Below are positions 25,465 to 64,000 of a DNA stretch of 64,000 nt, in pieces. Below the pieces are notes generated by a model. The model saw only the letters and a program-made list of their open reading frames with translations. It was not told the DNA's origin and did no database searches. Every line of letters starts with the position of its first letter. Within the stretch, counting starts at the first letter, position 1. Source of the DNA: Blepharisma stoltei ATCC 30299 (Eukaryota; Protista; Ciliophora); NCBI GenBank assembly GCA_965603825.1, contig CBFDEM010000014.1, positions 620,001 to 684,000 of the forward strand, in the 5' to 3' direction. The translations under genes were made by a program, and so were the position numbers.

Positions 25465-25493
25465 AATAAATGGCCATTATATTTATTTTTAGC

Positions 25494-27905: not shown

Positions 27906-30900
27906 TTAAGTATAAGTAGGAGGGTACATTTCATTGTAAAGCCTAACTGCTTTTTCCCCAGCTGTCTTTCTCAGAACTTCAGTAGATACTAAATCAGTCA
28001 ATCTATCAGCTCCTGAAATCGAATTGATATCAAGATATCCACTTTGGCCTCTCGTCAAGTTTGCAATCTCTTGAAATTTTGCCTGAGCAGCACTATAAAC
28101 ATAAAACGCATGTATTGGAATTTTTTTTTCTATAATTTTGGCTAATTCGTCCTCATAGTACCCAACAACGTTATATCCCGAGCGATTTCAATAATCTGAA
28201 TTATGACCTCTTTTTCAGGAGATTTCTTCACGAGTGTTTGGAGGAGAATCTCCAATTAAAATTACTTGTGAAATCTTATGAACTTCCGAGACCCTATTGA
28301 CATGCCACAATCCAACCTCTATTGCTTCATTTGTCCAACCATATTCAGGCCACACATTTTCCATAAATCCTTGAAGGATATCCGGCTTATTTGTAAATGG
28401 AGAAACTTCTAGTAGTTTTTCCTTAGGAGCATTATAGTTTCTATAAACGCAGTACTGCAGCTGAAAACTTCCAGGGTTTACCCCACTTCTAGTTAAAACT
28501 TCACATACTCGTGAAAACATAATACTTACTGTATTTTTGGCGCTTTGAAGTAATAATGACATAGATCCTGTTGCGTCCATTAGAACAATTGTTTTTTTAT
28601 CGTCAATTTCTATTGGAATTACTTTATTCTTCTCTTTTAAAAATGCCTTAGCCTTTCCAATATTATTATTCTGAATAAAATTCAAAAATTCAATTGTACT
28701 GTCATGTTGAGCTTTGGATTGTTTTACATTATTAGATTCGCCTATATTTTCAATTTGAATAAATTCATCCCTTTTTTTATTTAATGATTCATAAAAGGAT
28801 CCATTATTTCTCATATTTTCAATATCTAATTTTGATATTAGAAAATGTTCTAATTCATTATCCAAAAGAATCATGCTAAACGATCCTTGTTGTCCTTGTC
28901 TTGCACATCTTCCCATAATTTGGGTTTCCTCGGATACATCTTCTGATAAAAATGTTTGAATTACATGAACTCCTCCATTAGTCGAGATTTCAAGGTTATA
29001 GCATTTAAAATCAATTCCTCTGCCATACGCTCTTGTTAATAATGATACAGTGTTTGGAACCGTCGCCTTTTTGATCATCATATTCCTGTTTTCTACACTC
29101 AAACTCTCAGTCATTAGCTGAATTTCATAATTGCTATTTTTCAACTGCGATTTATTAAAAAAGTCCATTAATTTTTTTTCATTTTCAAAAAATACCAGTA
29201 CAGCTCGTTTGCATCCTTCTTTGATTCCTTCTATTTGATTATTTATTTCTGTAAATATCCTCTTATGATAATCATCTATATTTTCTATATGAACATCTTT
29301 ATTTTTTCTGAACTTTCGATTATTTTCTCCAAAAACTGAAGGCATGTAAGTGTTTAATGCAATTTTATATTCATTTTGTATAATAATTTTTTCATAATCC
29401 CCCAATGTTTTCAAAGTTCCAGTAACCCCCATAATATATTTAAATTTGTGAGGAATTTCTGCAAATGAGAACATGCCACAATTGATCCCAATGAAAATGT
29501 TTTCATTTAAGCTTTCTGTTGGGATCTTTCCTTTTTCGTTCTCTAAGTAATAGGCAAATAAAGTATCGCAGCCATAAACGATATTAAATGAAATTCCATC
29601 ATTCTCTTTATAGCCAATTTTACCATTCTGCACTTCATAATCATAAGATTTACGCTTCTCCTTCTGGCTATCAACAGAATCATGAGATTGAAGATCTTTC
29701 ACCTTGCTAATCATGTCTTTTACAGCTTCTTCAATGAGAAATTCAAAGCCGGGGAACTGTTTGCAGCAATTTTTATATTCATTGGCGTTCCAAAGCTCCA
29801 TAAGTTGGCCGTTTCTGTTTTTTCATATAAAATCAGTTAGTTCTTTAATTGTAGAGTGTCTCAACTTAGCAAGGGGCCTATACATATTTCCATAGAAAGA
29901 TTTGGTGAAAAACACGTCGACTTCGTCTATCAGTAGGATTTTAGGTCTTTCTGCGACTCCGTCACTAAGACTTGGGCATCGCCCATTTTGTATTAAGTCT
30001 AAAACTATTGCTCTAATGTCTCCTCTGGAATTAATATCGTCTTCACAAAGTTTATTAAAAGTCCCATATTTTATGTATGGGTGTATATTTAAAGCTGCAT
30101 ATAAAGGTTGAAAATCTTCGAAATCTCTATTGCTTAAATGCTCACTATAGCAGGCACAGTTTACACTAAACCCTAAAAGAGCAAGCATAGAGCACAAAAA
30201 TGCTAATGTGATTGATTTTCCTTCCCCTGTAAGGATTTGAACCAGGTTATTTTTAGGTTCGACGTTTTCATAGCCAATGCCAATCATGCGGAAAATTGAT
30301 AAAATTTGTATTGCATGTGGTTTGAAAAACGTAGTTTCTCCCTCTTCATCAACATCATAGTTGCATTTTTTCATATTCAAAAACATTCAGAGTATTGAAA
30401 TATATGCTAAAAGCTCTGGAATAAATTCTCTTATGGTCTGAATATCTGGATTTAAGGGATCTATGGCATGATCCCTTGAGAAAGCTTCTATATCACTTAT
30501 GATTTGCGATATAATATAATCCAGTCCTTTATCACGAATGATATCTATTTTAAAATAAGTTCCATGAAAATCGTGGAATATCTCATAATACTCCTCGTAT
30601 TTATCATTCAGTTCTTGTTTATTTAAATTTGACCCTTCGATTTTCTCCAGTGCGTATTCTATATCATGTCCTTGGGTTTTTCCCAGCCAAAACCTTTGAC
30701 TAACTCCTTCAAAGAATTTGTGCTCTGCAATTATATAAATCCCTAATCCGGTTTTGTGACTTTCTAGCTCATTAACAATATTTACAGCTTTATCTTTATT
30801 TTTTATTCTAAATTTCTCCAAAAATTCATCCATAACTTTATCCAGTTCTTTTTTCAATAAAGGGAAATTATTTGAGACTTTTTTCATATCTATCATATGC

Positions 30901-33900
30901 TCCACAATTTTACTTATTTCTATCTCATTTTCTGCCTTTTGTCTGAACTCGTTAGTTTTCTGATAAATTTTCTTTTCAATCTTTTTGATTGTGTTTTTCC
31001 AATCAAGATCTTTGATATTTAAATTTTTTTCAAAAGCCGACAAACAACTATAATAAATTCTTATTTCATTGAAATCTTCATTATTAATTTCTTCTTTGTT
31101 TATATAGCTTGAAGCAGATTCTACAATGCTCTCCATTTCTCTTTCGATAGATTCAATTGCATTCGATTCAATTTGTTCAAGATTTGCAATGTCTGGGTTT
31201 ATATGATTTTTTATTTCTTCGTAGCTTTTTATTCTATTTCATCTTTCTTGGATATCTTGTGCCTTATCTTCAAGAAGTTTTTGATGCTTAATTTCATCAT
31301 ACTGAATTTTGAAGTTTGTGAAGTACTCATTCTCTTGACGCAGCATTTCACTAAAGTGATTTGCAATTTCAGAATACCGTAGAAGATTTTCAATTTTAGA
31401 ATAATTGGTATGCATATGATAGTTTCCGTTTTGTGACAAATATTCTTTAAAAATTCTGAAAAGCTCGTCTCACTCTTTGATTTTATTTAAAGCTCTATTG
31501 CAGTTGTGAAGATTATGTGGAGGCTTGAAATCGATATAGCTTTTATTGAGCTTTATATAAAAATCAGATATACAAATTAGCATTGTTTCAATATTATTTT
31601 CAAATTTAAACATATCAGTAGAAGGCACTTCTTGATCAAAGTTTATTTTAAAATCTATAAAAATTTTAAAAAAATTAAAGGCCTCTATTAGCTCAGTGCT
31701 GCTATCTTTGTGCTCAATATTGAGAAGAGTTTTCAAATTGCTTCGAATTGCTTGGTTTATATTGCTTTCGATTTCTTTAAACAATGAATCACAATTAGAT
31801 GCAATTCTGATCAGCTTATCTTTAAAAACTAATTTTTTAGCTTTTTGAAAAGCAGAGTCCCAGTCATGATTATTAAGGGCAGAAATAATTTCAACCCTAA
31901 TTGTTGACACAACTTCTCTTAGTTTTTTTTCTACATAATTGTAGTCTTTATAGGAGTATTCACTAGTATATTTTAGATGGATATCGCATAATTCTTTAAT
32001 GTGCCCATCTTTTGCCAAGATGTTGATTCTTTCTCGATTATATTTTTTCTCTTGATCGTATCCTTTCTTAATATCATCGCTTAAAGTCTTCGCTAAATTA
32101 GCAATATCATTAGGCAAGAAATCTAAAATAGAAAGTATATCATTGCAAATACTCCTTTTCTCTTGTAAAGATTTTCAATTGATAGCATTTCTTATGCTAT
32201 CAAATTTTTTATAAATCAAATTTTTAATCTCATTAGAACTTTCTTTATAAATTGGGAAATCTTTTGAAGTTTTTTCAAACTCTTTCAAAATTAATTTTGG
32301 AGAAAGTTCTTTAAAATCGTTGATTTCGCATTTTTCGAATCGTAAAATAATATCCTGGCGTAAACGATCCAGATTTTTCTTAAAATCATTAATACTTTTG
32401 GATTCAAATTGAGATCCCAAACACTTAAGTAAATTGGTTTTTAAGTCATCAATATTTTTGATTTTTGCCTCAGCTTCACTAAATTTAATAGACTGAATAG
32501 CGACTTTAATTGCAGATAGAAAAGCTTCAACCTTTTCAGAAAATACAGTCTTGGCATCCTTCTCAAGACCAATAAGTGACTGCTCATATTTCTTATCAAA
32601 TATTTTATATAAATCATTTTGCTTTGCATTCGAAACTTTTTCAAAATTTGAACATATCTCATTTATTTGCGCATAATCTAGCTTGGAATTATTTATTTGA
32701 AAAATGCTATCATATGAGCCTTTTATTAAATTTTCGATTGAGCAAATTAATTTCTCTTTGATTGTATCTTGAAACGCATTCCATGTTGCGTCATCCAGAG
32801 CTGCTATTAGTTGCTTTGCTCTATCAAAATTATGGCTTACAATAGATTCAATTATATTTTGGCATGCTTGGTCAAGTTTTGAATTTTTTATTTTTTCATA
32901 ATAATCAGAGGTCGCTGAAAAATTCTCATTTATTTTGGCAAAATCGTTAACAATCGTTAGTAATAAAGCAATTTGTCTGAATTGATTTCTTTCAACGCAA
33001 ATTCTAAGCTTTTCATTGAAAAAATAATTTAAATTATTGAACTCCTTGATATAATGCTCACAATGAGGCTGCATGTCTAAAACTCTGAAAAATGATGGGG
33101 ATTTTGTATTTAGTAATGATATTTCTTTAAAATTCAACGATATCTGATGAGAATAATTTTTTATCAAACTGATGTCATTTTTTTCGTCTAAAATAATTTT
33201 TGAAATAGAACTTAGGCAGTTTTCTAATGAAACTAAATGGTTGTTGTAAAATTGAGATAAATTAGACAAAACGCTTGAACAGAACTGCCTTACAGATTCA
33301 GCTAGTTCAGGTATATTTTTGCACTCTTCAATGTAATTAAACGAGCTTTCTAATTTTTCAATATCAGGCATATTTTTTGCAATCTTTTCTTTGAATATTT
33401 CAATAAAATTTTGGATTTTGCTTATTTTTGTATTTAATTCTTCAATATTTGTAAATCCATATCTCCCAAGCAATTCTTGACATTCTAAATTTTTCTCCAA
33501 TTTTTGATATTTTAAGTATTCTTTCCTAACAGTCTCCAATTTTTTGAACTCGTTTCTCTCCTCTGCAATATCCTGCAATTCTGGGTTATACTCTCTTTTT
33601 ATAGATTTCAGTGTGTTTTCAACCCTTTCTTTAAATTCTATCCATATATTTTTATCATAATTTTTTAATGAAGGAATAAATTCTTCCAATTGAAAAATAG
33701 GATCCAGCTTTTGAACAATGCTATAACCCTTAGGCACGTTGAAATGAAAATTAATGCCTAGGTCAATTTCTTTTAACTCAAACTGCAGCTTTTCAATACA
33801 GCGTTTTATTTCTTTTTCGATCCCTAAAATTTCATTGCTGTAAGTTCCTTCACTGAATTTTTCAATTCATTTTCCTGACTCCAGCCAAGAAAAGCAGTCA

Positions 33901-36900
33901 TACAATAGCTTGAAATCTATAGATTCGGGAGAATTCGAAAAAGACTTGATGATTTCTTTGGCTTCTCTCTTGAAAAAGCTAATTTTATTTATTATCGAAT
34001 TTAATGCTTCTTGATAAGAGGCAGCTATAAGGTATTCTATATCTGGAACCTTCATCAACAATTCGAATTCGTCAAAATTAGATTCAATATCAGCTATATC
34101 ATTTGTGGAATCATCATTGATAATTGATAAAACAGATTTCTTAGAATTTTCAAAATGCGTTTTATATTCTTCAAAAATTGGTTGGAGGAAATCTTCTATT
34201 TCATTTTTATCTGTAAGAGCATATAAGTCCTGCACGCTTAAAGCTGATTTTATTGTATAAATATTTTCTTGAAGTATTTCTATATCCGATTCTTCAATAT
34301 ATCCTTTTTTTAACAGCCCAATTGAACTATCACATCTTCCTTTTAATTTTGAAATAAATTGTATTAAAAGAAGGCCATGCTTTTCATCTAATTCTGGTAA
34401 GCACAAGTGATCACGAGCAATATCTAAAAATTTCTGCTCTTGTAATAAATTCTCAACAAAACCCTTAAAATTATTTATTTCTAAATTTGAGCTTGCATTT
34501 CCCAACAAATTTCTAATCAGAGTTTCATATTCTTTACAAAGATTTGCATAATATGGGATTATATCTTGAAATTTTCCTCTTAAAATTTTTGCATTGCTGA
34601 TTTGAGCTTTCAAAATATAAGAATCAATATCCTCGTCTCTTAAGTCGAAGTTGATAAGACCTAGTTTAAATACAATATTGGTGATCATAGCTGCTGGGTT
34701 GACTGTCTCCTCTCTTAAATGGCATTCTCTGATTTCTTCGATTTTTTTCAAATAATTGTGAACTTCTTGATATGTTTGTATTATATTTTCATCCAAAATT
34801 GCATGGCTTTCTAAAAAGCTATTAAATTGAGAAACTACTTTTTGGTAGATATTATTAGTCGTTCTAATTACAGATTCTACACATTGATTATATTGATTCT
34901 CAAACATGGAGAATAAGTTTGCTATATATTTTACCTCATCCAATTTTTGCTTGATTATTTCATAATTTATAGAATTTAAGGCTTTTTCAATGTCTTTTGA
35001 ATGGATAGATAATTGATTCATTACCGAAATTCGAGAATCTTCAGTAATAAAGCTTTTAAACACATTTTTTGGGTCATATATTGGCTCTCTTTCCATGATT
35101 TTTTGGATGAGTTTTTGAGGATTCCCATCTAGGTGATTAATTGTTATTACTTCGTGAACTGTTTTTTGTTCTATATCCTCAAGAATGTGCCTATACCCTA
35201 TATCAGAGTTTTTTGTGTTTGCCAGTGCATTGATCACTTTTCCATGGATATTTGAAGCTTCATCTTCAGAATATTTGGTAAAAACATATGTAAATGAGCT
35301 ACGATATTTATTAAAGTCAGGAATGAGCCTCATCAATGTATAAGCAATTTTTTTGATCCCTTCAAATCTATCGCCTTGAGCTTGGCTGCTTAATAAAATC
35401 ACTGGTCTTACACTTCTGCAATTTTTTACATGCTCAGCAATGCTTATTGTATTTGCGATGTCAACCTCTGTGCCATTTGTATCCATTAATCCTGGAGTAT
35501 CGCATAGATAAACAGTTTCTTCGGAATTTTTTATTTTTATTGGCACCATAGTGATATATCGAGTTTCTGATCGGTCATGAGAGGAAATTGTTATATTTTT
35601 TAATAAGGGATGCTTTACAGCAATAGATTTTATATGCCATACATTGTCTTCTAGGATTTTAAACATTAATGTTGCTGTGGATTTTCCTGCACCTGTAGCA
35701 CCAATAAGAAAAATAATATCTTTATTTTCTAGATTCTCAGAGGATTTGGCTGATTTGCTAATCAAACGAGCAATCTCTCTTATATTAACAGGGCGTTGAC
35801 CTTTTAGAATTTTTTCAGTTATTTTGATCAAATTTTCTCAGTTTTGATTCTCAAAGCTTGAAATAAAATCTGAAATTAAGCTTTTTGATAAAATTCATTT
35901 AGGATTCTGTTTAAAATATTCAATTAAATTTCTGAACTCTTTATTGTGATCTATATGCTCAATTTTTCTGTGAATGTCAAATGTTGAATCAAAATTATAG
36001 GATAGAGTACAACTATTTTCAAACTCATTTTTTTACAAAAGAATAACTGTAAAGCCATTATTTTTTGGTGAAAAAAGCCCAAAAATAAAGGTATAAAAAA
36101 GTGCATTGCGCTTTTTATAGTCAAATGGGATGAAAAAAGTAATATTAAATTTTTTTTTCCAGGATTTATAAAGATTAAATTAAATAAATAGCAAATAATA
36201 AAATTACACAAAGAACAAATGGTGTAAATTTAGTTCAAATAAGCTGAAATAACTATTTAAATGTTCTAATGTATCGCCTTCTTATGCAGTGTGATTTAGA
36301 AAGAGCCCACCATTTTAACTTCAACTAGTGATATCGAAACATTCTGCGTCGCCCTTTTATCGGATGGAGGCAATCCGGCAATTTTAAGTGCCACAAGCTG
36401 GCCAGAAAACCTCATAGGTGTTCTGCCTTGTGGCTTTAGCAAGCTTTGCAAACTTTGCTTCCATGGGAATTTTAAGCAGTAAAATTCTATGCTTTCTTGC
36501 TTCCATGGGTCAATATATCTTTCAATATGCGATAAGCCAAGTTTAGCATTTGGATAAGGCACAGCAGAAAAACTGAACTTTATTATCATAAAATTTCACA
36601 GGAGGAAGAGTTCTCATTAATCCCGTGCATATCTATTTTATAATTATGCAAAAGATAAAAGTATAATTTACTTTTTCTGCTTCGTCCAAATTATATACTT
36701 TATAGTAGGCAAAACACAAAATACTCGTGAGAAATCTTTCCATGCAATATGGGATAGAAGATATATGGTTTATCATTCCTTCCAGGAAGTCTATATTTTT
36801 TTGATTTTCAGCTTCCTTAGGATCTATAGTTATCATAGTTTTCAAATTAATTCGCTTATATATGCAAAGCAACTTTTCTAAATCAGCGAGAATGATCTTT

Positions 36901-38099
36901 TTACTGTTTGCTTTGTCTATTTTATCGCTGTTTAGATAATGTGAAATACTTGTTTTCGTTTTATTTATCATTTCTTCTATGTTTTCAGGATTTTTAATAT
37001 TGAACTTGATTAATCCTTTTTTCAATTCCTCTTCCAAATTTTCTTCCTCAAAAGCGCTTTCATTTTGCTTAAGCTCTTTATTTTCTTTTGCTGCTTTTAT
37101 TTCTTCAGACAATTGCAGCAATCTTTCAAGATCTATTAATTTATTTTTTGCGCTTTCCTCTTCATTAAATTTTTTTCTCTTATGGTAAAATAAAACTTCC
37201 TCTTTAGCTTCTTCTATTTTTTCAGCTATATTGCTTATATCATCAATTTCGTAGATTCTAAGCAGTTCATTCATTTCCTGTTCATTTTTATTTTCTTGAT
37301 TCTTCATTTGATCAATATCAAATTCATTTATTTCCTGCACATTTGTATTTTCTTGATTATTTACTTGAACAATTCCCAATTCATTTATTTCCTGCTCATT
37401 TTTATTTTCTAGCTTATTCTCTTCACCAGTATTTAATTCACTTATTTCTTGCTCGTTTTTATTTTCTAGCTTGCTCACTTCATCAATATTTAATTCATTC
37501 TTTTCCTGCTCATTTTCATTTTCCTCTATACTTTCTTTGTTAATATTTAATTCATTTAAGTCTAGCTCATTTATTTTTTCCTGGTTTTTTATTTCATTAA
37601 TATCCATATTTTCATTTTCCTTCGAATTTTCATCAATTCCATTTACTTTCTCAATTTGTAGAATCTCATATTTTTCTTTTTCTTGTGCCATTTCACCATT
37701 TTCTTGAATAGTTTCTGATGGATTTTCAGGACTTTCTTTCTCACTTATTTCTATTTCGATGTTAAAATTTTCATCATATTCGCTAGGGAAATTTAATTGA
37801 GTTTTTAGAGGGATATTTCTGATTAAGTCGATTGCCTCCGAGCCCAGTAGTTTGGGATCATCATAAGTCTTCATATAAATATTGAGGATTAAAGAGCTGG
37901 AAATATCTGGCTGCAAGTGTATAGGAGCAAGGCTGGAGACTTCTGATAGTTCAAAAGCAAATGATGAAAAGATGACTTGAGACGTTATGGGGTCACATAA
38001 AGTATAGCAGAGCTTTGGAATGGTATCTGAGTTCACATTTGGCTTGAAATTAACTTCGTTGATTTTAAAGGTAACCAAACGAATATTTTCACTTATCAT
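27906..38099 (-). CDS. Giant C2-like/GTPase/SecA-like ATPase/vWA protein, copy 1 (~3165 aa after removing a 696-bp insertion)
   Basis: All ORF-track fragments share one frame and join via TGA=Trp. G1 GATGAGKS (~35679-35702), G3 DTPG, FTKY; SecA-type ILTGEGKS (~30213-30230), LLIDEVD, GVTGT, TRAYGRGIDF, GGVHVI, QIMGRCARQG; vWA DATGSM (~28560); TAA at 27906. Confidence 0.85.
35992..36695. mobile_element. 696-bp insertion bounded by 8-bp direct repeat AAATTATA (IES-like or transposon-derived)
   Basis: Repeat at 35992-35999 and 36688-36695. Excision gives KVYNFDSTFDIHRKIE, colinear with copy 2 KSYDLNQSLNIHQKIE. Confidence 0.8.
37262..37525 (-). repeat. 57-bp (19-aa) coding tandem repeat, about 5 units (ENKNEQEINEL...)
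   Basis: ENENEQEKNEL / ENKNEQEISEL / ENKNEQEINEL / ENTNVQEINEF / ENKNEQEMNEL at 19-aa spacing; only one unit in copy 2. Confidence 0.85.
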
Positions 38100-38402
38100 T
38101 TATGAATCTATAAATTTTTCTGAATATCTGCACAATAAAATGGAGCAAATATTTTTACTTAGACCTATTCGAATTTTAGGTCTTTCAACACCTAACTGAT
38201 AATAATAAAAGAACCTTGGTCCTAACTTTATTCGATATAAAAATACGTGAGAAAGTGACTTTCTTAAGCTAAAGCATTGCAAATGATAAAGCATCGTATG
38301 AGTACGCTTTACCGAAGCCAAATTAGAAAGAGGCTATAAAAACAGCAAGGAATTAATTATTCGTTTATCTTAAAGTGATTAAGAATAAGGACGAAAGTAA
38401 GA

Positions 38403-38458
38403 TATAGCGCTTTCCCGAGGATGGCGCGGAATGGCGCCATCCTCGGGAAAGCGCTATA
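38403..38458. repeat. Perfect 25-bp inverted repeat with 6-nt loop, GC-rich, TATA-terminated
   Basis: TATAGCGCTTTCCCGAGGATGGCGC-GGAATG-GCGCCATCCTCGGGAAAGCGCTATA. Confidence 0.95.
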
Positions 38459-40107: not shown

Positions 40108-40180
40108 TCATTTTTAAATAGAGAAATATAAATAAAGGCAAAATTTTTTAATTTTCGATTAAATCTTACTATAATAATTA

Positions 40181-47800: not shown

Positions 47801-50800
47801 CTATATCCAGAGAAATGGATAAAATTGTAGATGACGCCTCACATTTGATAAATAAAGATGAAATCAGGGAAGAAGAATTTACTAAAATTAGAATTTATTA
47901 TAATTGCTTGGTAATGTTTGAGAAAAATCTAAAAATCAAAGGCTTTGATTGAAAAAAGACACTCAGAGGAATTGAAGCCAAAATTTTTAGTAAAACTGTT
48001 GAATTAAGAGAAAAAGCTGAAAATGGAGCTCAGGTGGCAGAAATTGTAGATCCTATGATAAAAATGAAGAACATTTCAAATAATTTTCCTTTATTAAAAG
48101 AAGGACTAGATAAAATTTTGGATGAATTTTTAGAAACTTTTAGGAAGAAAAACAAAGCCAAAGCTGTGGCAATTTTCGAAGAATTAGAAAAACATCCAAG
48201 CGGGCTAGGACTTTATATTCTTTCAGAACATAAATTTTTCGAGGGTGTAATGCAAAGAATATGGCTTAATAAGACCCAGAGGCATGATATAAATTATGCG
48301 CTAGATCAAATCAAAGGTACAAATTTGAATAAGGAAGAGTTAGAAGATAAGCATAGGGATTACACTGAGCATTTTGGTGAGCTGCACAGAATATATTGAA
48401 GAATTGCAAGCAATGAAGGGGCGGATAATGCTATCTCTCAAATATTAAGCCAAATAGAAATAGTGTCCAAAAATTATGCTATAACCTCTTCAAATCCAGA
48501 TATTAGCTTATTTAAGGAGTTTATACCTGAGCTTTTAGCTTATATTGCAATGCTATGGGTGCTTTTAAATATTAAAAAATATAATCAAGATATAAATGAT
48601 ACAGAACAAGAAATTACAATTGTTACCCCTCATGCAATACAAATCTTATCAATATTCCGAATGATTGGAATTGGCTATCGAGAAAATACAAATCCTAAAA
48701 ATAATCTAGTGCAAATTTTAACAGGTGAGGGAAAATCAATCACACTAGCGTTTTTATGCTCTATGCTTGCCCTGCTAGGATTCAGTGTGAACTGCGCCTG
48801 CTATAGCGAGCACCTAAGTAACAGAGATTTTCAAGATTTTTAACCTTTATACACAGCCCTAAATATTTGCCCTTATATAAAATATGGAACTTTTAACAAA
48901 CTTTGTGAAGATGAAATAAATTCAAAAGGTGACATCAGAACGATTGTTATAGATTTTATCAAATTTGGAAGATGCCCAGGAGCATATAGTGGAGTAGAGG
49001 AAAGACCCAAAATTCTTTTAATAGATGAGGTAGATGTCTTCTTCACTAAAACTTTCTATGGAAATATATATCGGCCTCTTGCTAAGCTAAAGCATGATAC
49101 TATTAAAAATCTGACTGATTATGTATGAAAAATAAGAAAAACGCCTCAACTGATGGAAATATGAAATGCGCCTGAGTATAGACTATGCAGTCAGCAGTTT
49201 CCAGGGTTTGAATTTATTATTGAAGAGGCTGTTAAAGATATGATAAATCATGTAAGGCAGTTTGAGTCCCATGACTATATAGTACAGCATGACAAAATTT
49301 GCTACAAAGAAAACGACGGAGTTTCATTTAATATTGTTTATGGATATAATACATTATTTGCATACTATTTTGAGAATGAAAAGGGAAATATATCTCAAGA
49401 AAGCTTAGAAGAAAATATATTTATTGGAATTAAGTGTGGAATGTTTTCATTTGCAGAAATTCCTCACAAATTCAATTACATTATGGGAGTCACTGGAACT
49501 CTAGAAACTTTAGGTGATTATGAAAAGCATATTATAGAGAATGAATATAACATAAAATTAAATACCTATATGCCATCAGTGTTTGGGGAAAGCAATCGTA
49601 TTTTTAGAAAAAACTTAGACATTTATGTAGAAAATAAAGACAATTACAGCATGAAGATAATGTCAGAAATAAATAGCCAAATAGGAGGCAAAAAAGCAGG
49701 TTGCAAAAGAGCTGTATTGGTATTTTTTGAAGATGAAAAAAAATTAATGGATTTTTATAATACTTCGAACCTAAAGAACACTGATTATGAAATTCAGCTC
49801 ATGACAGAAAGTTTAAGTGTAGATGACAGAGTTATGATGATTAAAAAAGCCACAGTTCCAAATACAGTATCATTATTAACAAGAGCTTACGGCCGAGGAA
49901 TTGATTTTAAATGCCAAAATCATGAAATTGAGACCAATGGAGGAGTGCATGTAATCCAAGTTTTTTTTTTCAGAAAATATATCAGAAGAAACTCAAATTA
50001 TGGGAAGATCTGCAAGGCAAGGCCAAGAAGGATCATTCAGCATGGTCCTTTTAGATAGCGAACTCGAAAAATTTTTGGTTTCGAAAAAAGATATTGAAAA
50101 TATGAGAAATAATGGAACAATTTATGATGGTTTAAATGAAAAGAGAAATAAATATAATCAAATTAAGAATGACAATGAATCTGGCCATGTGAAGCAATCT
50201 AAAGCTCTTCATGATAGTTCTGTTGAATTTCAGAGTTTTCTTCAAAATAACAATATACAAGGAGCTAAAGTATTTCTGCATGAGCTTAACAAAGGGCTTA
50301 GCATTGATATTGGAAATTCAAAAACAGTTGTTTTAATGGATGCAACGGGGTCTATGTCACACTTGCTGCAGAACGCTAAAAATACTGTGAAAGTTATGTT
50401 TTCAAGAGTCTGCGCAGTTTTATCAAAGAAAGGGGTTAGTTCTGAGTGTTTTCAGCTTCAGTACTGTGTTTATAGAAACTATAGTTCAAATGAGGATAAA
50501 ATACTCCAAGTTTCCCCATGAACAAATAAGCCTGATATTCTAGAAAGATTTATGGAAAACGTGCGACCTGAAGGTGGTCAAGGAAATGAAGCAATAGAAG
50601 TTGGATTATGGCACATAAATAAGATTTCGCAAAATGATAAAATTTCACAAGTAATTTTAATTGGTGACTGTCCTCCAAATACTATTGATAATATTGCTGA
50701 AAAGAGAGGTGCACGATCATCTTATTGAAATAGTTCAAAATTTAGCAGCGTCGAATATTACGAGCGAGAATTAGCAAAAATTATAAGTAAACAAATCCCA

Positions 50801-51010
50801 ATAAATGCCTTTTATGTCGATAACTGCGCTAAAGTTAAATTTGAAGAGATAGCAAGACTTACAAAAGGCCAAAGCGGATTTCTTGATATTAATTCAAGCT
50901 CAGGAGCTGATAGACTCACTGATTTAGTTTCTACAGAAGTTTTAAGAAAATCTGCTGGAGAAGACGCCGTAAAGCTTTATAGAGAAATGTACCCTCGCTC
51001 ATATACTTAA
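41836..51010 (+). pseudogene. Giant C2-like/GTPase/SecA-like ATPase/vWA gene, copy 2 (two in-frame TAA and a +1 homopolymer frameshift)
   Basis: ATG 41836 aligns with the copy 1 start; same motifs (GITGAGKS ~43195, TGEGKS ~48721, DEVD ~49024, DATGSM ~50339). TAA at 43552 (Glu in paralogs) and 48841 (Gln in paralogs); T10 run at 49961-49970 is one base too long; ends TAA 51008-51010. Confidence 0.8.
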
Positions 51011-53499: not shown

Positions 53500-54800
53500 A
53501 TAAAAAACGCCTATAAGGAAATCACAGGCGTTTTGGAATTGAATCATAGCTGAGATATATAAATTGTGAAGTCTTAGCCTCAGCAATTTTTGATGACACT
53601 AGCGAGTTCATTGAGCTCAGAACTACACTTCATTGATAGTTAAAAGATGAGCAAATAAATCCAGTTGATAGGTCTGCAGAAAATATTAGAAGATTGATAT
53701 CACAAGAAGAAAAATAAGAAGGGCCCGATAAAGTTGCTTGAGGGTATATGTTTCCTTCAAGCTAGGGTTTGATTATTAGTGGCTCGTAATCTAATGTGCG
53801 TCGTCTTCTCCATATTTAAGTATATGCAATCTATCTAAAAGATTTCGTCTGTTCTCTGTTTGAAATCTAATTCTTAAAGTTCTAGAATCAACCCATGCGC
53901 GAATTGGATTTTTTCCCATTTTTTTATAAAGAGGAATCAAGCAGTACCATATCACATTCTGCATTAATTGTTGTGTCGATATTTACAAAAATATGCATAT
54001 ATAGCCTTATTGATGAAGAAAAGAAAGCCCCACTAATCAGTGCATTTGATAAGCATTTTTGCATGTGATACAAAAGCTTTGAGACAAATAGTATAATCTC
54101 TGAAACTGCAGGGAAGAGATTAGGAGTTATCAGTGCAGGAGCTGGGCATACTCTTTAACTCAGGATTGGGCACACATCTGTAAAAAAAGTCCTATCACTT
54201 TTATTGCAGGAAGTGCAGAGGAGGTTGCAGGTGGCTATTCATTATTTGAGTTGTTCAAGTTATACCAATTTTTGCATCTGCATAGCGAATTGCTGTCAAG
54301 TTCTGCATTTTTTGATGATCAGTGCACTGTGCTTCATTGCATGCACAGTTTCCAGGCAAACTAACAGTATGCATTCGATCAGACTGGGTATACTCAGAAC
54401 AAGAATTAATGCGAAGAGCAAAATTTGCACTTCTCTTTGCAAGCAAGACATTCAGAGCCTGTAGAATCACAATAAGGGTAATAGTAACAGAGTTGCACAT
54501 TTTTATCAGAGCAGTAAACTTCACTGGAAAAATTCATTTTAAGGCTGCTTGGATCTACTATCATTTGATCTGGTAGAATTTATGAATCATTTGAAGAATT
54601 ACAGATATCACAAAATTGTCAATAGTATATGTCTTATTGCTGTATGGGCAGACTCTGATAAGAATTCACAGAGTTAATTCTAAATGCAATCTTTTTGCGC
54701 GAAAATTCGGATTTGCACCGCACCAGAATAGCATCTAGTTTGCATAATCTACTATGATGTTAAATATTTAAATCTTATGCCAGCCAGATTATTAATAGTT
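53500..54800 (-). pseudogene. Heavily degenerate Cys-rich (furin-like) gene relic
   Basis: Minus-strand fragments such as CNLLCTSCNKSDRTF and many TGC/TGT codons among stops and frameshifts; boundaries approximate. Confidence 0.35.
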
Positions 54801-55048
54801 TAGGATAGCACACCATTGCCAAGCTATTTCTTTAGGGTGCTAGATTGGTAAGGTGTTAAGGCTTAAGTAAAAGTTATTTATTTTTTCCTGCAAGCGTAAA
54901 TTGCATATATAATATAATTGAATTACACTCTAAAATTATATATTAGAAAATTAGAATGCTAAAACCACATTCTGAATTGCAATTTATAGTAAATTATTAT
55001 TGAGCAGGATTTTTACTTTAATAAAAGTGAATAAAAGCTGAGTTAAAT

Positions 55049-58000
55049 TTAAGTATATGAAGGTGGGTACATTTCTTTATAGAGATTGACTGCTTCTTCT
55101 CCAGCTACTTTCCTTAAAATCTCAGTAGAAACCAAATCAGTTAGTCTATCAGCCCCTGAAATTGAATTAATATCAAGAAATCCACTTTGTCCTTTTGTTA
55201 AAGCTGCAATTTCTTCAAAAGCTTCTTTAGCGTACGTTTTTACATAAAATGCATTTATTGGGACTTTCTTATCTATGATTGTTGCCAACTCCTGCTTATA
55301 GTGTTCAACAGCTCTAAATTTAGATTGATTTCAATACGAAATATATTTGCCTCGTTTTTCCTGAATATCATCAACTGTATTTGGAGGCATATCACCGATT
55401 AAAATAACTTGTGAAATTGTATCATTTTTTAAAACGTTATTTACGTGCCATAATCCAACCTCTATTGCTTCGTTTCCCCAACCTCCTTCTGGTTGTACAT
55501 TTGCCATAAACCTTTCAAGAATATCTGGATTATTTGTTCATGGTGAAACTTGGAGGATTTTATCTTCAGTAGAACTATAATTTCTATACACACAATACTG
55601 CAATTGGAAGCACTCAGGGTTTATTCCTGTATTTGAAAGCACTGCGCACATGCGTCAGAACATAATTTTCACTGTATTTTTGGCATTTTGCAATAAATGA
55701 GACATAGATCCAGTTGCATCCATTAAAACAATTGCTTTGGATATCCCTAAATTGATACTGGGACCTTTATTCAGTTCTTGTAAAAATGCTTTAGATCCTT
55801 TGAAATTCCTACACTCGATTCATATCAAAAACTTTGTTGTCTCATCATGAAAACTTTTTGATTGCTTCACATGGTTTGATTCATTGGCATTCTTGATTTG
55901 ATTAAAATTATTTCTTTTGCTATTCAAAGATTCATAAATTCCTGTTTTATTTTTTTTCATTTCTTCAATGTCTTCTTTCATGATTTGGAATTTTTCTAGG
56001 TCATCATCTAAAAGTATCATACTATACGATCCTTCCTGCCCTTGCCTTGCAGATCTACCCTTAATTTGAGTTTCTTCTGATACATTTTCTGATAAAAATA
56101 CTTGGATTACATGAACTCCTCCATTGGTCTCAACTTCATGATTGTAACATTTAAAATCAATTCCTCTGCCATAAGCTCTTGTCAATAATGACACAGTATT
56201 TGGAACTGTGGCTTTTTTAATCATCATACCTCTATCTTCTACCGATAAACTCTCTGTCATCAACTGTATATCATAGTCAGTGTTCTTTAGGTTCGAATTA
56301 TTATAGAAATGTATTAATTTTGCTTCTTCTTCAAAAAATACCAATACAGCTCTTTTGCAAGGTGGCTTTTTGCCTTCTATTCGAATATTTATTTGTTCTA
56401 GTATCTTATTATAGTAATTGTCCTTGTTTTCCACATAAATATCCTCATTGGTACAAAATTTTCTATTGCTTTCCCCAAATACTGATGGCATTAGCGTTTT
56501 TAATTTTATTCTATATTCATTCTCTATAATATTTTTTTCATAATCCCCTAAATCTTCTAAAGTTCCAGTGACTCCCATAATATATTTATATTTATGAGGT
56601 ATTTCTGCAAATGAGAACATTCCACATTTAATTCCAATGAAAATATTTTCTTTTAAGCTATCTTGACTAATATTTCCTTTTTCATTCTCCAAATAATAAG
56701 CAAACAATGTGCTATACCCATAAACAATATTAGATAAAATCCCATCATTCTCTTTGTAGCAAATTTTATCATTTTTGACTATATAACCATGAGACTCAAA
56801 TTGACGCACATGAGTTATCATATCTTTAACAGCTTCTTCTATAAGAAATTCAAAGCCTGGAAATTTTTGGCAGCACTGATTATACTCATTTGAATCCAAT
56901 CACTCAAAAAGCTTAGGCGTTTTTCTATATTTTCATATGTAATCTGTTAAATTGCTAATTGTTGGATCTTTAAGCTTTGCGAGGGGCCTATAAATATTTC
57001 CATAAAATGATTTAGTGAAAAATACATCGACTTCATCTATTAGGAGAATTTTAGGTCTTTCATTATCTCTATAGCTAATTTTAGGAATCCTTCCAAATCT
57101 AATAAAATCTAAAACTATCTCTCTAATATCTCCTTTAGAATTGATTTCATCTTCACAAAGTTGATTAAAAGTTCCATACTTTATATAAGAGCAAATACTT
57201 AAAGCTGTGTATAAAGGCTGAAAATCTTGAGAGTCTCTTTTACTTAGATGTTCACTATAGCAAGCACAATTTATATCAAACCCCAATAAAGCAAGAATAG
57301 ATGATAAGAATGCCAATGTAATTGACTTTCCTTCTCCAGTTAAAATTTGCACAAGATTATTTCCAGGATTTGTATTCTCATTATAGCCAATCCCAAGCAT
57401 ACGAAATATTGATAGAACTTGTATAGCGTGAGGAGTTACGAATGCAATTTGACTATCTTCATCATTCACATCTTGGTTGTATTTTTTAATATTCAAAAGT
57501 ACCCATAGCCATGCAATATACGCTAAAAGCTCTGGAATATATGTTTTTATTAGACTAATATTTGGATTTCGACAATCTTTCGTGTATTTTTTAGATAGAA
57601 CCTGGATTTCGCTAACTATTTGAGCTATCGCAGTATTCACTCCTTCATTGCTAGTCAGTCTTAAATAAATTTTTTGGATTTCACCTAATTTTTCAATGTA
57701 GGCCAAATAGTTATTGTTTAGCTCTTCAATATTCAAATTTGAGCCTTGGATATGCTCCAAGGCATAGTCGATTCCATGTTCTTGAGTTTTTTTCAGCCAC
57801 AATCTTTGCATAACCCCTTCAAAGAATTTATGTTCTGTGATAATGCAGAGTCCTAGTCCACTAGGGTGCTTTTCTAGCTCTTCTAAGATTGCGACTGCTA
57901 TTGTTTTGTTCTTTTTCCTAAATGTCTCTAAAAATTCATCCAAAATTGAATCTAATCTTTTCTTTAATAAAGAAAAATTATTTGAAATATTTTTCATGCC

Positions 58001-61000
58001 TATCATAGACTCAACAATTTCGCTTGCTCCCTCTCCTTTTTCAGCTTTTTCCTTTAATTCTAATGTTTTTTCATAAATTTTGTCTTCTATCATTCTGAGT
58101 GTATTATTGAAAGCAAAACCTTTAATACTTAAATTTGCCTCGAAATGAGTCAAACAATTATAATAAATCTGAATTTGATTAAAATCTTCTTTCCTGATAT
58201 CATCTTTCTTTATCAAATTTGAAGCGTCTTCGACAATCCTATACATTTCATCTGAAATGGATTTGATTACATCAGATTGTATTTCTTTAAGATTAACAAT
58301 ATTTGAATTTAAATGGATTTTTACTCCCTCAAAACTTTTTATTTGGTCTCATTTTTCTTTGATATTATTAATACGGTCCTCTAAAAGTTTTGGGTGCTTA
58401 ATTTCATCATTTTGAATCCTAAAATTTAAGATATAATCATAAAAATCATAAAGAGTTTGATTTAAATCATCAGCAAAATCTGCATATCGGCGGATTCCTC
58501 TAATTTTTAAAATGTCAAACCTGGGATGATGATTTTGATATTCTTTAAAAATTTGTAAAAAATCATCCCATTGTTTGATTTTATTTAATATTGTGCTGCA
58601 CTTGATAGTGTTTTTTGGAGGTTTATATTCCATATAACTATTGTCAAGTTTCTCGTAAAAGGCTATAATGCTAGCTTGCATGCTTTCGATAGTGTTATTA
58701 ATTCCAAACATGTTAGACAACATATTTTCTTTCTCACAATCAATTTTAAAATCCATTGTAATAGAATAAATTTTGAATGCTTCTATAATCTCAGCACTAT
58801 CTTCCTTATGCTCAATATTCAGAAGAATATTTAAAGCCTTTTTTATTAACTTAGTGATACTATCATAAATTTCTGTAAGTATTCCATCGCTTTCTTTCAA
58901 TACTGAATCTAAATTTTCTTTAAGCTTCAAAACCCTTGCTTTATTAAAAACAATATCTAAATCTTTCCTATGCATTGCTAAATTAATTTCTCCTTTAATT
59001 AAATATAAAGCATCCCTCAATTTATTTTTCGCATATGCATAATCTGAATTGGAGCCATCCTTTTTTAAAGAATTAATCATTTTGCATATATCGCTTATTT
59101 CTTGATTGCTCGCAAGAGCATCGATTCTTCCTCTTGTATCTTTTTTATTTTCTTTATAACTTTTCACTATTTCTTTAATTAAGTTCTTAGCTGAAGCTTC
59201 ATATTCTTTTGGCAAAAAATCTAAAATAGAAGATATTTCATCAACAATTCTTTTCTTTTCAGGATTTGTTTTATTTTGGATATTAGCTTTTATTTGTTCA
59301 AATTTGCTGGATATTATATCTTTTACTTTGTAAAGGCAATCACTATACTTTTGAAAATTTCTTGAGGCTTTTTCTAATTCTTCCAAAATTAAACTTAGAG
59401 GAAATTGCTTAAAACCTTTGATATCGCACTTTTCCATTTTTTCGATAATAGTTATTGGTAAGTCATTAAGAATATTTTTGATGTTTGAGACATGTTCAGC
59501 TTCAAATTGTTTTCCAAGAATACTAAGTATATAGTCCTATAATCCTAAGAAATTTTTCATTTTAAGCTCAGCTTCATGGTATTTGTTGAAACTAATGGTT
59601 ATTTCTATAGAATTTATAAAATCTGCAATCTTATTATAAAATTCTGTTCTTGCTTCATTTTGATATTCAGTTAGTATTTTTTTTTGGTTTTCATCAAAAT
59701 ACTTATTGAGACCGCTGTTTTTAAATCTTACGAATTTTTGAAAGATTTCATGTATTTCCTCTATTTCCGCTTGCTGCAATATCGAGTTATTAATGCTTTT
59801 AGACCTTTCTTTTGCGTCTTTCAGAAATTGTTCAATTCCGCAATATACTGATTTTCTCTATTTAAAAAATGCAGTTGGCATGTGGATTCGAACTCCATGT
59901 GTAGAATAAAATTTCATATTATAAATTAAATAACTCCAGGTTTAGAATTTTATTCAATAATGGAGTTTGAATTCACGTGTGAGCTCATTTTTGCAAAAAG
60001 TGTAAAGCATGATATAATTTTTCCTTAATTATATCAATAGATTGAGCTCGAGTATCATTGTCCATTTCTTCTATTGATTTTATTGCTGTTTCAAAATTAT
60101 GATTCTCAATTAAATCAATTATTTTTTGCTGTTTAAACTTTGAATTCTGAATTTTTTGATACTCATTTATGATAGCAGCAAAATTCCCATCAATTTCTTT
60201 AAATTCATTAGCAATGCTTATTCATGAAGAAATTGCTTCTAAGTCATTTCTTTCATTGCTAATTTGTAGTTTTTCATGGAAAGTTATGCGTAAATTATTG
60301 AGCTCATTGGCAAAATGCTCAAACTGAAGCTGAAATTCCAAAAAGTTGAAAAATGATGGAGATTTTTTATTCAATAACAATATTTCTTTAAAATTTAAAG
60401 AAAACTGAATAGAATATTGCTTTACAGAGTCAAAATCACAATTAGTATCATCTGAAATATTCCTTGCAATAGCATTGAAGCACTCTGCCAAAGAGATAAG
60501 ACTATTGTTGTAAAATTGAGATAAATTCGATAAAATACTCTGTGAAAAACTTATGACAAATTCCGAGAGCTGGGGTATGCTTTTACACTCTTGAATATAA
60601 TTAAAATAATTTTCTATTTTATCAACGTTAGGCGTATTTTTCGTTAATTTTTGGTTAAAAATATTGATAAAGTTTTGGATTTTTGTTATTTCAAGATTTA
60701 TTTCTTTAAATGTTTCAAATCCGTTAATTTTGAGCAATTCTTGACACTCACTATTTTTATTTTCTTCTTTATATTTTGAATAATCAAGTCTAATCTTTTG
60801 TAATCTCTCTAATTCATTAATTTCCCTTTCAATATCACTATGCTCTGGGCAAAACTCCTTTTTAATAATTTTCAAGGTATCTTTAATTCTTTCTTGGAAT
60901 TTAATCCAAATATTATTCTCACTATTTTCTAATGAAGGTATAAATTCTTTTAATTGGAGAATTGGGTCTAATTTTTGAACTATGCAATATCCTTTCGCCA

Positions 61001-64000
61001 CATTGGGAGGACAATTAATTCCTAAGTCAATTGCTTCTAATTGATCCAATAATTTTTTAGTGAAATTTTTAATTTCTCTTTCTATACCAGACAGCTCATT
61101 ACTATAAGTTCCTTTTTGAAACTTTTCGATCCACTTTCCTGATTCAAGCCATGAGAAGCAGTTGCGCAATGCTTCTAGATCTGTCGACTCAGGAGACCTG
61201 GTTAAAGATTTTACAAATTCTCTTGCTTCTTTTTTGAAAAAACTGATCTTATTTATAAGTGAGCTTAATACATTTTGATAAGAAGCAGTAATAAGGGATG
61301 CAATATCTGGGATCTCCATTAAATAGCTGAATTCATCAAATTTTGTTTCAATTTCAGCTATATTATATGTGGTTTTATCATTAATGAATGAGATGACATT
61401 GCTTTTAGCGTCTTCAAAGTGCTTTTGATACACATCAAGAATTGACTGGAGCTGGTTTTCTAATTCATCTTTGGCTATCAGACCATTAAAGTGGCGAGAT
61501 CCGATAAATGACTTTATTATTGAAATATTTTGGTTTAGAGATTCGATATCGCTTTTTTCAAATCTTCCTTTACTTAATATTGCAATGGAGTTATCATGAT
61601 TTTCTTTTAAGGTAAATGATAACTTCTTTAGAAGATCATTATGCCTTTCGTCAAAAGCTGTCAAATCGAAATGGGTGCGAGCAATTCTTAAATATTTTTG
61701 CTCTTGCGATATGTCTTTAGCAAAATTTTTAAAGTTTTTCTTTTCCAAATTAGAAGTGGCAGATGATAGTAAGCTTTCAATGAGATGTGAATATTCGTTA
61801 AAAAGATTTTTATAGTGCGGCACAACGTCTTCAAATGTTTCACTTAAAATTTTAGCATTGTTCAACTGGACATTCAAAATATCAGGATCTATATTATCTG
61901 ATTTTAAGTTCAGATTTGTAAGATCTAGCTTTGAAACAATATTAGTTAACATTGCTGCAGATTTGACTGTTTCTCCCCTTAAATGGCTATCTCTGATTTC
62001 TTCTGACTTTTTAATAGTATTATAAACTACTTCATAGGATTTAATAGTATTTTCATCCAAGCTCCCATTCTTGTCTATAAAACTATTAAACTGATTAACA
62101 GTATTATTATATAAATCATTAATGCTCTTTATCACATGTTCTGCAGATTCTTTATATTGTGATAAAAATTGCTCAAATAAGCTTCCTAAATATTTCAACT
62201 CGTCCAATTTATATTTTATAATTTCATAATTCATAGGATTTGAGGCTATGAAAATGTCTTTTGAATGAAGCATTACTTGCTCTTTTATAGAAATTCTAGA
62301 ATCTTCAGTTATAAAGCTAACAAATGCAGTTTTTGGGTCTAAAATAGGCGCTCTTTCCATTATCTTTGATAGGAGTTCTTGAGGGTCATCTCTTAAAGGA
62401 TCAATAGTTATCGCCCCATTTTTAGTCTTATATTTTATGTCCTGCAAAATATGCAAAAACGCTTCATCAGGGTTTTCTAACAACCCTAAAGCATTCGTTA
62501 CCAGTGCATTTATATTGGAAGCCTCTTGGGCTGTATATTTTGTAAATGCGTATGTAAATGAATGGGAATACTTATTAAAATTTGGGACAAGTCTGGCCAA
62601 GGTATGAGCAATTTTTTTAACACCTTCAAACCTATCACCTTCTGTTTTACAACTTAATAAAATCAATGGCCTTACGCTTCTGCATTTTTTAACACATTCA
62701 ATAATACTTATTGTATTTGCCATGTCAACTTCAGTTCCTTTTGTATCTAATAGCCCTGGAGGATCACAAATAAAAATCTCTTCAAAATTTTTAAAATTTA
62801 TTGGCACCATAGTGATATATCGAGTTTCTGATTCTGCATGAGAAGAAATATTGATGTTTTTTAATATAGGATTTTTTACAGCAATTGCTTTAATATGTCT
62901 CACACCATCTTCCATGATTCTCTCCATCTTTGAGTCGCATAAAAAATGGGTTGTTGTCGATTTTCCTGAACCTGTAACTCCAATTAACAAAATAATGTCC
63001 TTGTTTTGCAAATCTTCAGAGCATTGGGCTGATTTATTAATCAATCGTTTAAGTTCCTTTATATTGACAGGCCGATACTCCTTGAGAATTTTTTCTGTAT
63101 CTTTTATTAAATTTTTCCAATTTTTATTAATGAAATTTTCTTTGAAACTTGGGGTAAGCTTTCTTGACGAAAATCCATTAGGTGAAGCACTCAAAACTTG
63201 AAGAAAATTGCTGTACTCTTTTTCAATGTCTAAATTCTCAATTTTTTTCTGAAATTCTGGTGCTATCTCAAAATTGTAGCTTTTATAATATGCAAAGCAC
63301 AAAATGCTTGTAAGAAACCTTTCAGTACAACAGGGAATTTCTGAAATATCATTTATCATTGCTTCAATAAAATCAATCTTTTTATCATTTCCAATCTCTT
63401 TGAAGTCTAAAATAATCATAGATTTTAAACAAATTTGCTTATCAATAGAAAGTAATCTTTCTAAATCAGCAAGCTTGTTTTCTTCTTTTTTTGCTTTTTC
63501 TGGCTTTTTTTTCCTGTGATTTGATGTAATACTTTCTTTAGTTTTAATTGTCAATTCTTCTAATTCCTTAGGGCTTTCAAGATTATATTTGTTTAAACCT
63601 TGCTTCAATATATCTTCTAAATCATTCTCTTTAGTATCTATAGCTATCATAGATTTTGAGCTAAGCTTTTTGTAAATAGAGAGCAGTTTTTCCAAATCAG
63701 CAAGATTATTTTCTTCAATTTTTGCATCATTTAATTTTTTCCTTTTATGATAAAAAGAGATACTTTCTTTTGCTTCATTTATTTTTTCTTCAATTTGTTG
63801 AGGATTTTCAATCTCGTACTTAATTAATCCTTGCTTAAGCTCTTCATCTAAATTTTCTTCCTCAATAACGCTAACATTTTGATTAATTTCTTCATGCAAT
63901 TTTAGCAATCTCTCAAGATCTTGTAATTTCTTTTTTTCTTCTTCCTCAAGGTCATATTTTTTCTTTCTATTATAAAAAGCAATATCTTCTTTTACCTCTT
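55049..64000 (-). CDS. Giant GTPase/SecA-like ATPase/vWA protein, copy 3 (5' end outside window; 169-bp insertion and one in-frame TAG)
   Basis: GVTGSGKS (~62960-62980), DPPG, ILTGEGKS (~57323-57340), LLIDEVD, TRAYGRGIDF, QIKGRSARQG, DATGSM (~55703-55721); ends MYPPSYT-TAA at 55049. Frame is continuous after removing one 169-bp unit at 59843-60016, except TAG at 59537-59539. Confidence 0.8.
59843..60016. mobile_element. 169-bp palindromic IES-like insertion bounded by ATATA
   Basis: ATATA at 59843-59847 and 60012-60016. Excision yields IIKEKLYCGIEQ (copy 2: IIKEKVYCQIEN) and corrects the frame; internal inverted arms at about 59862-59914 and 59946-59995. Confidence 0.85.

Follow-up and report, generated by a model that had tools for sequence, protein, structure and literature searches.

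SecA is the textbook motor dedicated to pushing proteins through SecYEG, and its PPXD and scaffold helix are the elements with which it handles polypeptides. Here we describe a 64,000-nt stretch of DNA from the ciliate Blepharisma stoltei (contig C14, 620,001-684,000, of a 41.5-Mb assembly; "the window" below means this whole stretch), which is eukaryotic and carries three giant paralogous genes in which a SecA-like motor is built into a far larger protein. These genes form part of an eight-copy array and belong to a large family, uncharacterised to date, whose members are giant cytosolic two-NTPase proteins. Reading from the N-terminus, a variable head is followed by a predicted GIMAP/AIG1-type GTPase and a long helical region that evolves fast; behind these come the SecA-type DEAD motor and, last, a vWA domain with a metal ion-dependent adhesion site (MIDAS).

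We found no description of a GTPase-SecA-like-vWA family in the literature, which yielded only two passing mentions. The Legionella fallonii gene lfa2470, labelled "[SecA DEAD-like]", is listed among genes judged to be eukaryote-derived (PMC4256840), and effectors of Amoebophilus are said to bear "GIMAP-type GTPase" and "SecA-like helicase-related" domains (PMC3482391). We infer that lfa2470 and the Amoebophilus asiaticus proteins probably belong to the same family or to its bacterial branch; both occur in lists only, without architecture, structure or function.

The genes become visible once the genetic code is adjusted. About 30 fragments obtained with translation table 11 merge into a few very long frames when TGA is taken as tryptophan. 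TGA and TGG occur in these frames at about equal frequency, and TGA codons of copy 1 (positions 722, 1521, 1882, 2070 and 2615) stand in columns that hold tryptophan in 34-45 of 45 non-Blepharisma homologues. Judged by these columns, TGA is read as tryptophan in the window genes. Searching with tblastn under table 4 recovered three collinear paralogues in the window with 54-68% identity. The paralogues are 55-60% identical and the proteins of the array ~3,100 residues long, and the search confirms the three giant paralogues proposed in the initial annotation of this DNA. The GTPase, SecA and vWA motifs listed there are likewise all present, at matching positions, in each of the three copies: GxTGxGKS, SETR, DxPG and FTK for the GTPase; TGEGKS, HLSxRD, DEVD, GVTGT, GRGIDF, GGVHVI and QxxGRxARQG for the motor; and DATGSM and LIGD for the vWA domain.

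The motor carries the most specific signal. In copy 1 it occupies 28773-30335 on the minus strand, with TGEGKS at 30213-30230, HLSNRD, DEVD at 29916-29927, GVTGT at 29415-29429, GRGIDF, and QIMGRCARQG at 28893-28922. Pfam SecA_DEAD matched at 35 bits (gathering score 24.6) and Helicase_C at 33 bits. When two pieces of the motor were compared with the PDB by phmmer, they returned SecA and SecA2, and the remaining matches were non-significant (E > 0.5). A family profile built from 53 sequences recovered SecA in the PDB at E ~1e-18 over profile positions 41-505, whereas the best other helicase, Mss116, reached 2.5e-5. SecA motifs I, Ia, II, III, V and VI are invariant across the 53 homologues. 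An AlphaFold model of the last 817 residues, covering the SecA-like and vWA parts, has a predicted local distance difference test score (pLDDT) of 87, and its top 36 Foldseek matches are all SecA. VIA structural alignment of this model gave SecA a Z score of 23 over ~500 residues, compared with 17.6 over 304 residues for eIF4A, and the template-modelling (TM) scores of the motor to SecA clusters in the ESM Atlas are 0.53-0.56.

The likeness to SecA and SecA2 extends to the SecA-specific motif variants (TGEGKS, xLSxRD, DEVD, GxTGT, GRGxDF and QxxGRxxRQG), to a large insert past motif II at the PPXD position, and to a long helix behind nucleotide-binding domain 2 (NBD2). In copy 1 the insert measures 167 aa and lies exactly where SecA has its PPXD, in NBD1 past motif II, with no match to PF01043. 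A scaffold-like helix of 42 residues (522-563 of the model) runs behind NBD2 and is followed by a short helix and then the vWA domain. Full SecA aligns over ~500 residues compared with 330 for the isolated motor, suggesting that in the model the insert and helix superpose as well.

The differences are equally clear. The Blepharisma motor sits at residues ~1,900-2,420 of a 3,100-aa protein, its identity to SecA is 15-20%, its setting is the eukaryotic cytosol, where no SecYEG partner would be expected, and a vWA domain follows the motor. No counterpart of the SecA wing domain or two-helix finger was seen in the C-terminal model, Pfam searches returned no match to SecA_SW (PF07516) or SecA_PP_bind, and no counterpart of the C-terminal tail or of the C-terminal SecB/zinc site was seen where the vWA domain stands. 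The NCBIfam SecA/SecA2 equivalog models scored 46.9 bits at best, against cut-offs of 725-1085. Because of this low score, and because the wing domain and two-helix finger were not seen, the motor is SecA-like and not a SecA orthologue. An ESM Atlas cluster that resembles the motor comprises 543 "SecA P-loop/SecA DEAD-like" proteins of ~920 aa, 87% of them eukaryotic with chordates commonest, an indication that the motor has relatives in vertebrates or tunicates.

The GTPase domain of copy 1 lies at 35133-35740 (minus strand), with the G1 motif GATGAGKS at 35679-35702, SETR at 35559-35570, DTPGLMDT at 35478-35501 and FTKY at 35271-35282. Pfam AIG1 gave no match and MMR_HSR1 reached 19 bits, under its gathering score; by sequence, the PDB returned only P-loop matches, and the kinship came from a structure search. 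The predicted structure (pLDDT 85) had GIMAP7 as its best Foldseek match (E 2e-6), followed by GBP1, Toc34 and GIMAP1/2/5. On this model the GTPase is GIMAP/Toc/GBP-like, with GIMAP7 nearest. It shares with GIMAP/AIG1 proteins the TRAFAC P-loop, the switch II signature DTPG(L/F)xDT, an FTK-type G4 and a helical extension behind the G domain. DTPG(L/F)xDT, GxTGxGKS and SETR are all conserved across homologues. The Blepharisma domain differs from GIMAP/AIG1 in its setting, being part of a giant fusion as opposed to a 30-40 kDa protein.

The C-terminal domain is a vWA domain with a conserved MIDAS. It spans 27909-28610 (minus strand) in copy 1, with the MIDAS-type residues DATGSM at 28560-28577, a conserved NEAIE, and LIGD at 28248-28259. 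Across 53 homologues T597, E678 and D704 of these motifs never vary, and conservation of D595 and S599 is 90% or more, DATGSM being the D-x-T-x-S variant of the MIDAS pattern DxSxS. Pfam vWA models found no match in the window copy; VWA_4 matched the homologue P0166 at 31.1 bits (gathering score 27) and P0218 at 23.8 bits. In the predicted structure, the stretch 585-803 superposes on integrin beta I-domains with Z scores of 17-18 (root-mean-square deviation ~3.0-3.9 Å over ~195 residues), and a TFIIH vWA subunit matched the C-terminal model in Foldseek with a TM score of 0.71. The initial annotation had named SecA specifically, had called the GTPase AIG1/GIMAP-like and the C-terminus a vWA domain, and had considered a SecYEG role unlikely; all of these assignments were upheld.

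The two remaining regions are less conserved or less easily named. An N-terminal domain of ~125 aa (37725-38099, minus strand, in copy 1) is kept among the Blepharisma paralogues. It had been called C2-like, an identity that is not supported: Pfam C2 gave no match even at E up to 5, hhalign against the true C2 heads of P0236 and P0239 returned a probability of 0.1, and the only C2 pointers were Atlas leads (score 0.82, TM 0.24-0.35) that fall below the Atlas reliability marks. The description of the proteins as membrane-targeted rested on that unsupported call. The middle ~1,600 residues are helical (30363-35132, minus strand, in copy 1), the first ~350 aa being modelled as long helical bundles, and are poorly conserved across the family. 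A conservation profile of 49 sequences bears out the earlier statement that the enzymatic modules are conserved whereas the middle is divergent.

The window holds only part of the array. A profile search of the genome located the C-terminal module at seven full loci and one fragment on C14 and at one locus on contig C3. Counting the window together with 70 kb beyond it, the array comprises eight copies and an N-terminal fragment over ~103 kb, arranged in head-to-head and tail-to-tail pairs; a local multicopy array had been predicted correctly, and its size of three was wrong. Two of the eight copies are single uninterrupted open reading frames (ORFs), namely c7 (P0151, 3,447 aa) and c8 (P0001, 3,042 aa), and six are not single open frames. 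The c8 gene, 54 kb past the window end on C14, encodes the NCBI protein CAG9315978 (P0001) at 100% identity. The difference in length between c7 and c8 is due to a long low-complexity run of EKCENQ type at residues ~330-600 of P0151, the protein of c7 (C14:721715-732055). The run sits between the N-terminal domain and the helical repeats and is short or missing in other copies.

The ratio of nonsynonymous to synonymous divergence (dN/dS) between c7 and c8 is 0.52 overall. The GTPase, SecA-like and vWA parts give 0.16-0.5, and two windows in the middle region reach 1.16 and 1.28. The catalytic modules of this intact pair therefore appear to be under purifying selection. Over the first 200 codons dS is 1.6, compared with ~0.1 elsewhere, which marks the N-termini of c7 and c8 as probably mosaic. 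Similarly, the first ~330 residues of copy 2 (c2) and c6 are 81-85% identical to c7, compared with ~50% for the bodies (regions compared: c2, window 41836-42798; c6, +99631-100593; c7, +111063-112055). The paralogue N-termini are, from these comparisons, mosaic, with heads that appear to have been swapped within the array.

The family extends well beyond Blepharisma. An exhaustive HMMER search with one 535-aa piece returned 2,553 cluster representatives, of which 680 scored below 1e-30. Many members are ~3,000 aa long, the module is C-terminal in every case, and more than 50 distant homologues retain both NTPase sites and the MIDAS. The family has named members in Blepharisma, three Tetrahymena species, bdelloid and monogonont rotifers, Hydra vulgaris, Hexamita inflata, Reticulomyxa filosa (in many copies), the choanoflagellate Salpingoeca macrocollata, and the algae Mallomonas and Ectocarpus; none of the named matches is from a fungus, a land plant or a named vertebrate. 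Two Tetrahymena thermophila homologues are the UniProt entries Q22U20 and W7XIB0. Tetrahymena, rotifers and Reticulomyxa show parallel expansions. The heads vary across the family and include U-box, C2, Death, jacalin, ricin-B, fascin, AAA and Rel-homology domains, and one member has a GBP-type G domain.

Relatives are also encoded by 126 stretches in bacterial genomes, almost all from intracellular lineages. Those with only the SecA-like part were seen in Legionella, Coxiellaceae, Chlamydiae, Wolbachia, Holosporaceae, Bandiella, Tisiphia and Mycoavidus. Full-length homologues are found in bacteria whose intracellular life is obligate or facultative, and two proteins from Legionellales metagenome-assembled genomes (MAGs), 3,272 and 3,048 aa long, match c7 collinearly from the GTPase to the vWA domain. 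One full-length MAG homologue lies between dnaE and recJ and adjoins an Ank-PARP gene, a setting that shows it to be truly bacterial. The product of the adjoining gene (L002:14703-17036) combines ankyrin repeats with a PARP catalytic domain, an architecture typical of eukaryote-like effectors. In a quick maximum-likelihood tree, all Blepharisma copies form one clade, which makes their expansion lineage-specific, those of Tetrahymena and of rotifers each fall into a few clades, and bacteria are basal or interspersed; an approximately unbiased (AU) test rejected a single split between eukaryotes and bacteria (p 0.00026). The distribution is wide and patchy and, from the tree, appears to include inter-domain transfer.

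None of the three window copies has an uninterrupted ORF, so that the frequent disablement claimed earlier proved stronger than stated. Copy 1 (27909-38099, minus strand; ATG 38097-38099, stop 27906-27908) is assembled as two ORFs of 488 and 2,708 codons, separated by a 696-bp insertion (36000-36695, minus strand) with 8-bp direct repeats TATAATTT at 36688-36695 and 35992-35999. Excising one repeat and the intervening sequence leaves a junction collinear with copies 2 and 3, and a script check of length and stops showed that copy 1 without the 696 bp is an uninterrupted frame of 3,165 codons; the database and structure searches were run with stop-free pieces of the window genes or with database proteins. 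A long intron was considered for this 600-700-nt gap and ruled out, since no canonical GT..AG ends occur at its boundaries; an insertion is preferred because cutting exactly 696 bp between the 8-bp direct repeats restores the frame. The insertion occurs once in the genome and belongs to no repeat family, and from its sequence it looks like a retained element resembling an internal eliminated sequence (IES) or a transposon footprint. This removable IES-like insertion is perhaps all that disrupts copy 1. About 300 bp upstream of the copy 1 start codon stands a perfect inverted repeat (38403-38458; 25-bp arms, 6-nt loop), which is GC-rich in DNA of otherwise 30% GC.

Copy 2 (41836-51007, plus strand) is a pseudogene as assembled with an otherwise full motif set. 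Its breaks are a TAA in place of the Glu of copy 1 (43552-43554), a TAA in place of its Gln within the SecA motif Ia region (48841-48843), and a 1-nt frameshift in a T10 run (49961-49970). Introns of 15-16 nt were excluded as their source: both stops are single-base substitutions to TAA, the frameshift lies in the T10 run, and tiny introns were also rejected because the ORFs of c7 and c8, the two intact paralogues, contain no introns. Copy 3 (55052-64000, minus strand, its N-terminus beyond the window to +66278) is also a pseudogene as assembled. It has a frameshift from a 10-nt insertion in a small palindromic stretch near 59.9 kb, and TAG codons at 59858-59860 and 59537-59539. The former is also present in the adjacent copy beyond the window, and the DNA around it is near-identical between the two. 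The palindromic stretch (window 59843-60016), which includes a tRNA-T-arm-like GGAGTTCGAATCC, is 87% shared with the neighbouring inverted copy c4 (C14:696061-696201), and the flanks are nearly identical. The comparison of copy 3 with c4 suggests a recent inverted duplication or gene conversion, by which time the genes would already have been broken. Elsewhere in the window, unrelated neighbours encode a protein kinase (18777-19529), an RPGRIP1-type C2-C2_1 protein of the ciliary transition-zone type (21367-23604) and a Kelch-repeat protein (23719-25476), all on the minus strand.

Our favoured interpretation, to which we assign slightly less than an even chance, is that these predicted proteins are nucleotide-regulated protein-remodelling machines used in host-microbe conflict. 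In such a machine, the head and the variable helical region would serve in targeting or recognition, the GTPase would drive nucleotide-dependent self-association as in GIMAPs and GBPs, and the vWA MIDAS would capture a ligand protein for the SecA-like clamp and motor to pull on or unfold, at the interface of eukaryotic cells and intracellular microbes. The signs of conflict are circumstantial and come from genome comparison: a lineage-specific expansion, two intact copies out of eight, mosaic N-termini, varied heads, and homologues in intracellular bacteria. They lend the same circumstantial support to the earlier proposal of a ciliate defence system, of which the word "ciliate" is too narrow for a family found in several eukaryotic supergroups and in bacteria.

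Several observations weigh against a role in conflict. All three window copies are interrupted and these loci may yield no full-length protein, and the classical G4 aspartate, which would specify guanine, is not conserved (FTKYP), so that guanine specificity is putative. Neither the GTPase piece nor the SecA-vWA module nor the full-length homologue from bacteria significantly matched any PADLOC anti-phage model. The dN/dS values derive from the single pair c7/c8, without a significance test, and the tree is a quick search with long branches in which the AU-tested group was named after the tree had been inspected. Finally, the C-terminal module is 40-48% identical between ciliate, rotifer and bacterium, which is unusually high for an immune gene; a conserved cellular target would fit this conservation equally well as defence.

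That conservation, very strong across supergroups, also speaks for a housekeeping explanation, which we regard as unlikely. The proteins would then remodel membranes or organelles (phagosome or food vacuole, extrusome, contractile vacuole or cilium) and be incidentally multicopy, with the GIMAP-like GTPase acting as a scaffold on membranes and the SecA-like/vWA module stripping or loading proteins. Some family members do have C2 heads, the structural neighbours of the GTPase (GIMAP, GBP and atlastin-type GTPases) work on membranes, and conserved host trafficking machinery is the usual target of bacterial effectors. It is harder to reconcile a housekeeping factor with the patchy distribution and its lack of fungal, land-plant or named vertebrate members among the named matches, with repeated lineage-specific expansions that leave many broken copies, or with Death, U-box and lectin heads and a fast-evolving middle region; the Blepharisma head itself is not demonstrably C2. 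We think it improbable that the family is instead a horizontally acquired, effector-type family of intracellular bacteria now decaying in the ciliate without a host function. Six of the eight array copies are disrupted, full-length copies exist in Legionellales chromosomes, and bacteria are basal and interspersed in the tree, with eukaryote monophyly rejected by the AU test. Yet two ORFs of 3,042 and 3,447 codons are intact with catalytic modules apparently under purifying selection, the genes use the ciliate code with TGA at invariant tryptophan positions, catalytic residues are invariant across eukaryotic members, and independent expansions in many eukaryotes imply retention by selection; moreover, the Legionella copy was scored as eukaryote-derived in an earlier phylogenetic study (PMC4256840).

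The nature of the motor bears on two further explanations. As its fold is that of an SF2 (superfamily 2) DEAD protein (eIF4A Z 17.6; Mss116 E 2.5e-5), it could bind RNA or DNA in place of a polypeptide and act as a nucleic-acid sensor or helicase of the RIG-I/DDX60 kind. SF2 helicases are frequent in immunity, and Hna, a defence helicase of bacteria, is among the weaker Foldseek matches. We give this little credence, however, because SecA is far ahead of every nucleic-acid helicase (~500 compared with ~300 aligned residues), the SecA alignment appears to include the PPXD-position insert and the scaffold helix, and Pfam searches detected no nucleic-acid-binding accessory domain. That the protein is a genuine Sec-pathway translocase subunit, paired with a SecYEG-type channel in an organelle or endosymbiont, is effectively refuted. 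Nothing but the similarity to SecA in sequence and fold speaks for it, whereas 1,900 residues of a giant protein precede the motor, its score is 47 bits where the equivalog cut-offs begin at 725 and run to 1085, a vWA domain takes the place of the unseen wing domain, two-helix finger and C-terminal SecB/zinc site, and ciliate codon usage excludes endosymbiont DNA.

Extending the proposed role in host-microbe conflict to the whole family, we raise the possibility, which we ourselves hold to be rather doubtful, that a SecA-derived polypeptide-clamping motor was recruited outside the Sec pathway and, fused to a GIMAP-like GTPase and a MIDAS domain, became a widespread yet overlooked branch of cell-autonomous immunity in eukaryotes (ciliates, rotifers, cnidarians, foraminifera, diplomonads and choanoflagellates), and that it was repeatedly exchanged with Legionellales, Chlamydiae and Rickettsiales, which would deploy it as effectors or decoys. 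Giant cytosolic proteins with a relative of SecA number in the hundreds and span at least five eukaryotic supergroups, and bacteria that live in eukaryotic cells also encode this relative; it is always fused to a vWA/MIDAS domain and usually also to a GIMAP-like GTPase. If the conflict role is correct, these proteins would represent a new class of innate-immunity machine, a mechanochemical protein-pulling effector, as well as a new case of gene exchange between hosts and symbionts. Even if their role is housekeeping, they constitute a large conserved family for which we found no description. Tetrahymena, Hydra and rotifers offer tractable test systems.

Among known systems, VLIG/GVIN1, GBPs, RNF213 and NLRs resemble the family in being very large cytosolic NTPases with lineage-specific expansions, pseudogenes, variable adaptor heads (here Death, U-box and lectins) and a fast-evolving region, and differ from it in that none joins a GIMAP-like GTPase to a SecA-type motor and a vWA domain. 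Midasin/Rea1 and the MoxR-vWA pairs are machines that strip protein ligands from complexes. Their motor is AAA+ whereas that of Blepharisma is of the SF2/SecA type, and no sequence homology to the Blepharisma proteins was detected beyond the common vWA fold. By analogy, what the two kinds of protein may share is a logic of construction, in which an ATP-driven motor is combined with a MIDAS-bearing vWA domain and long helical linkers.

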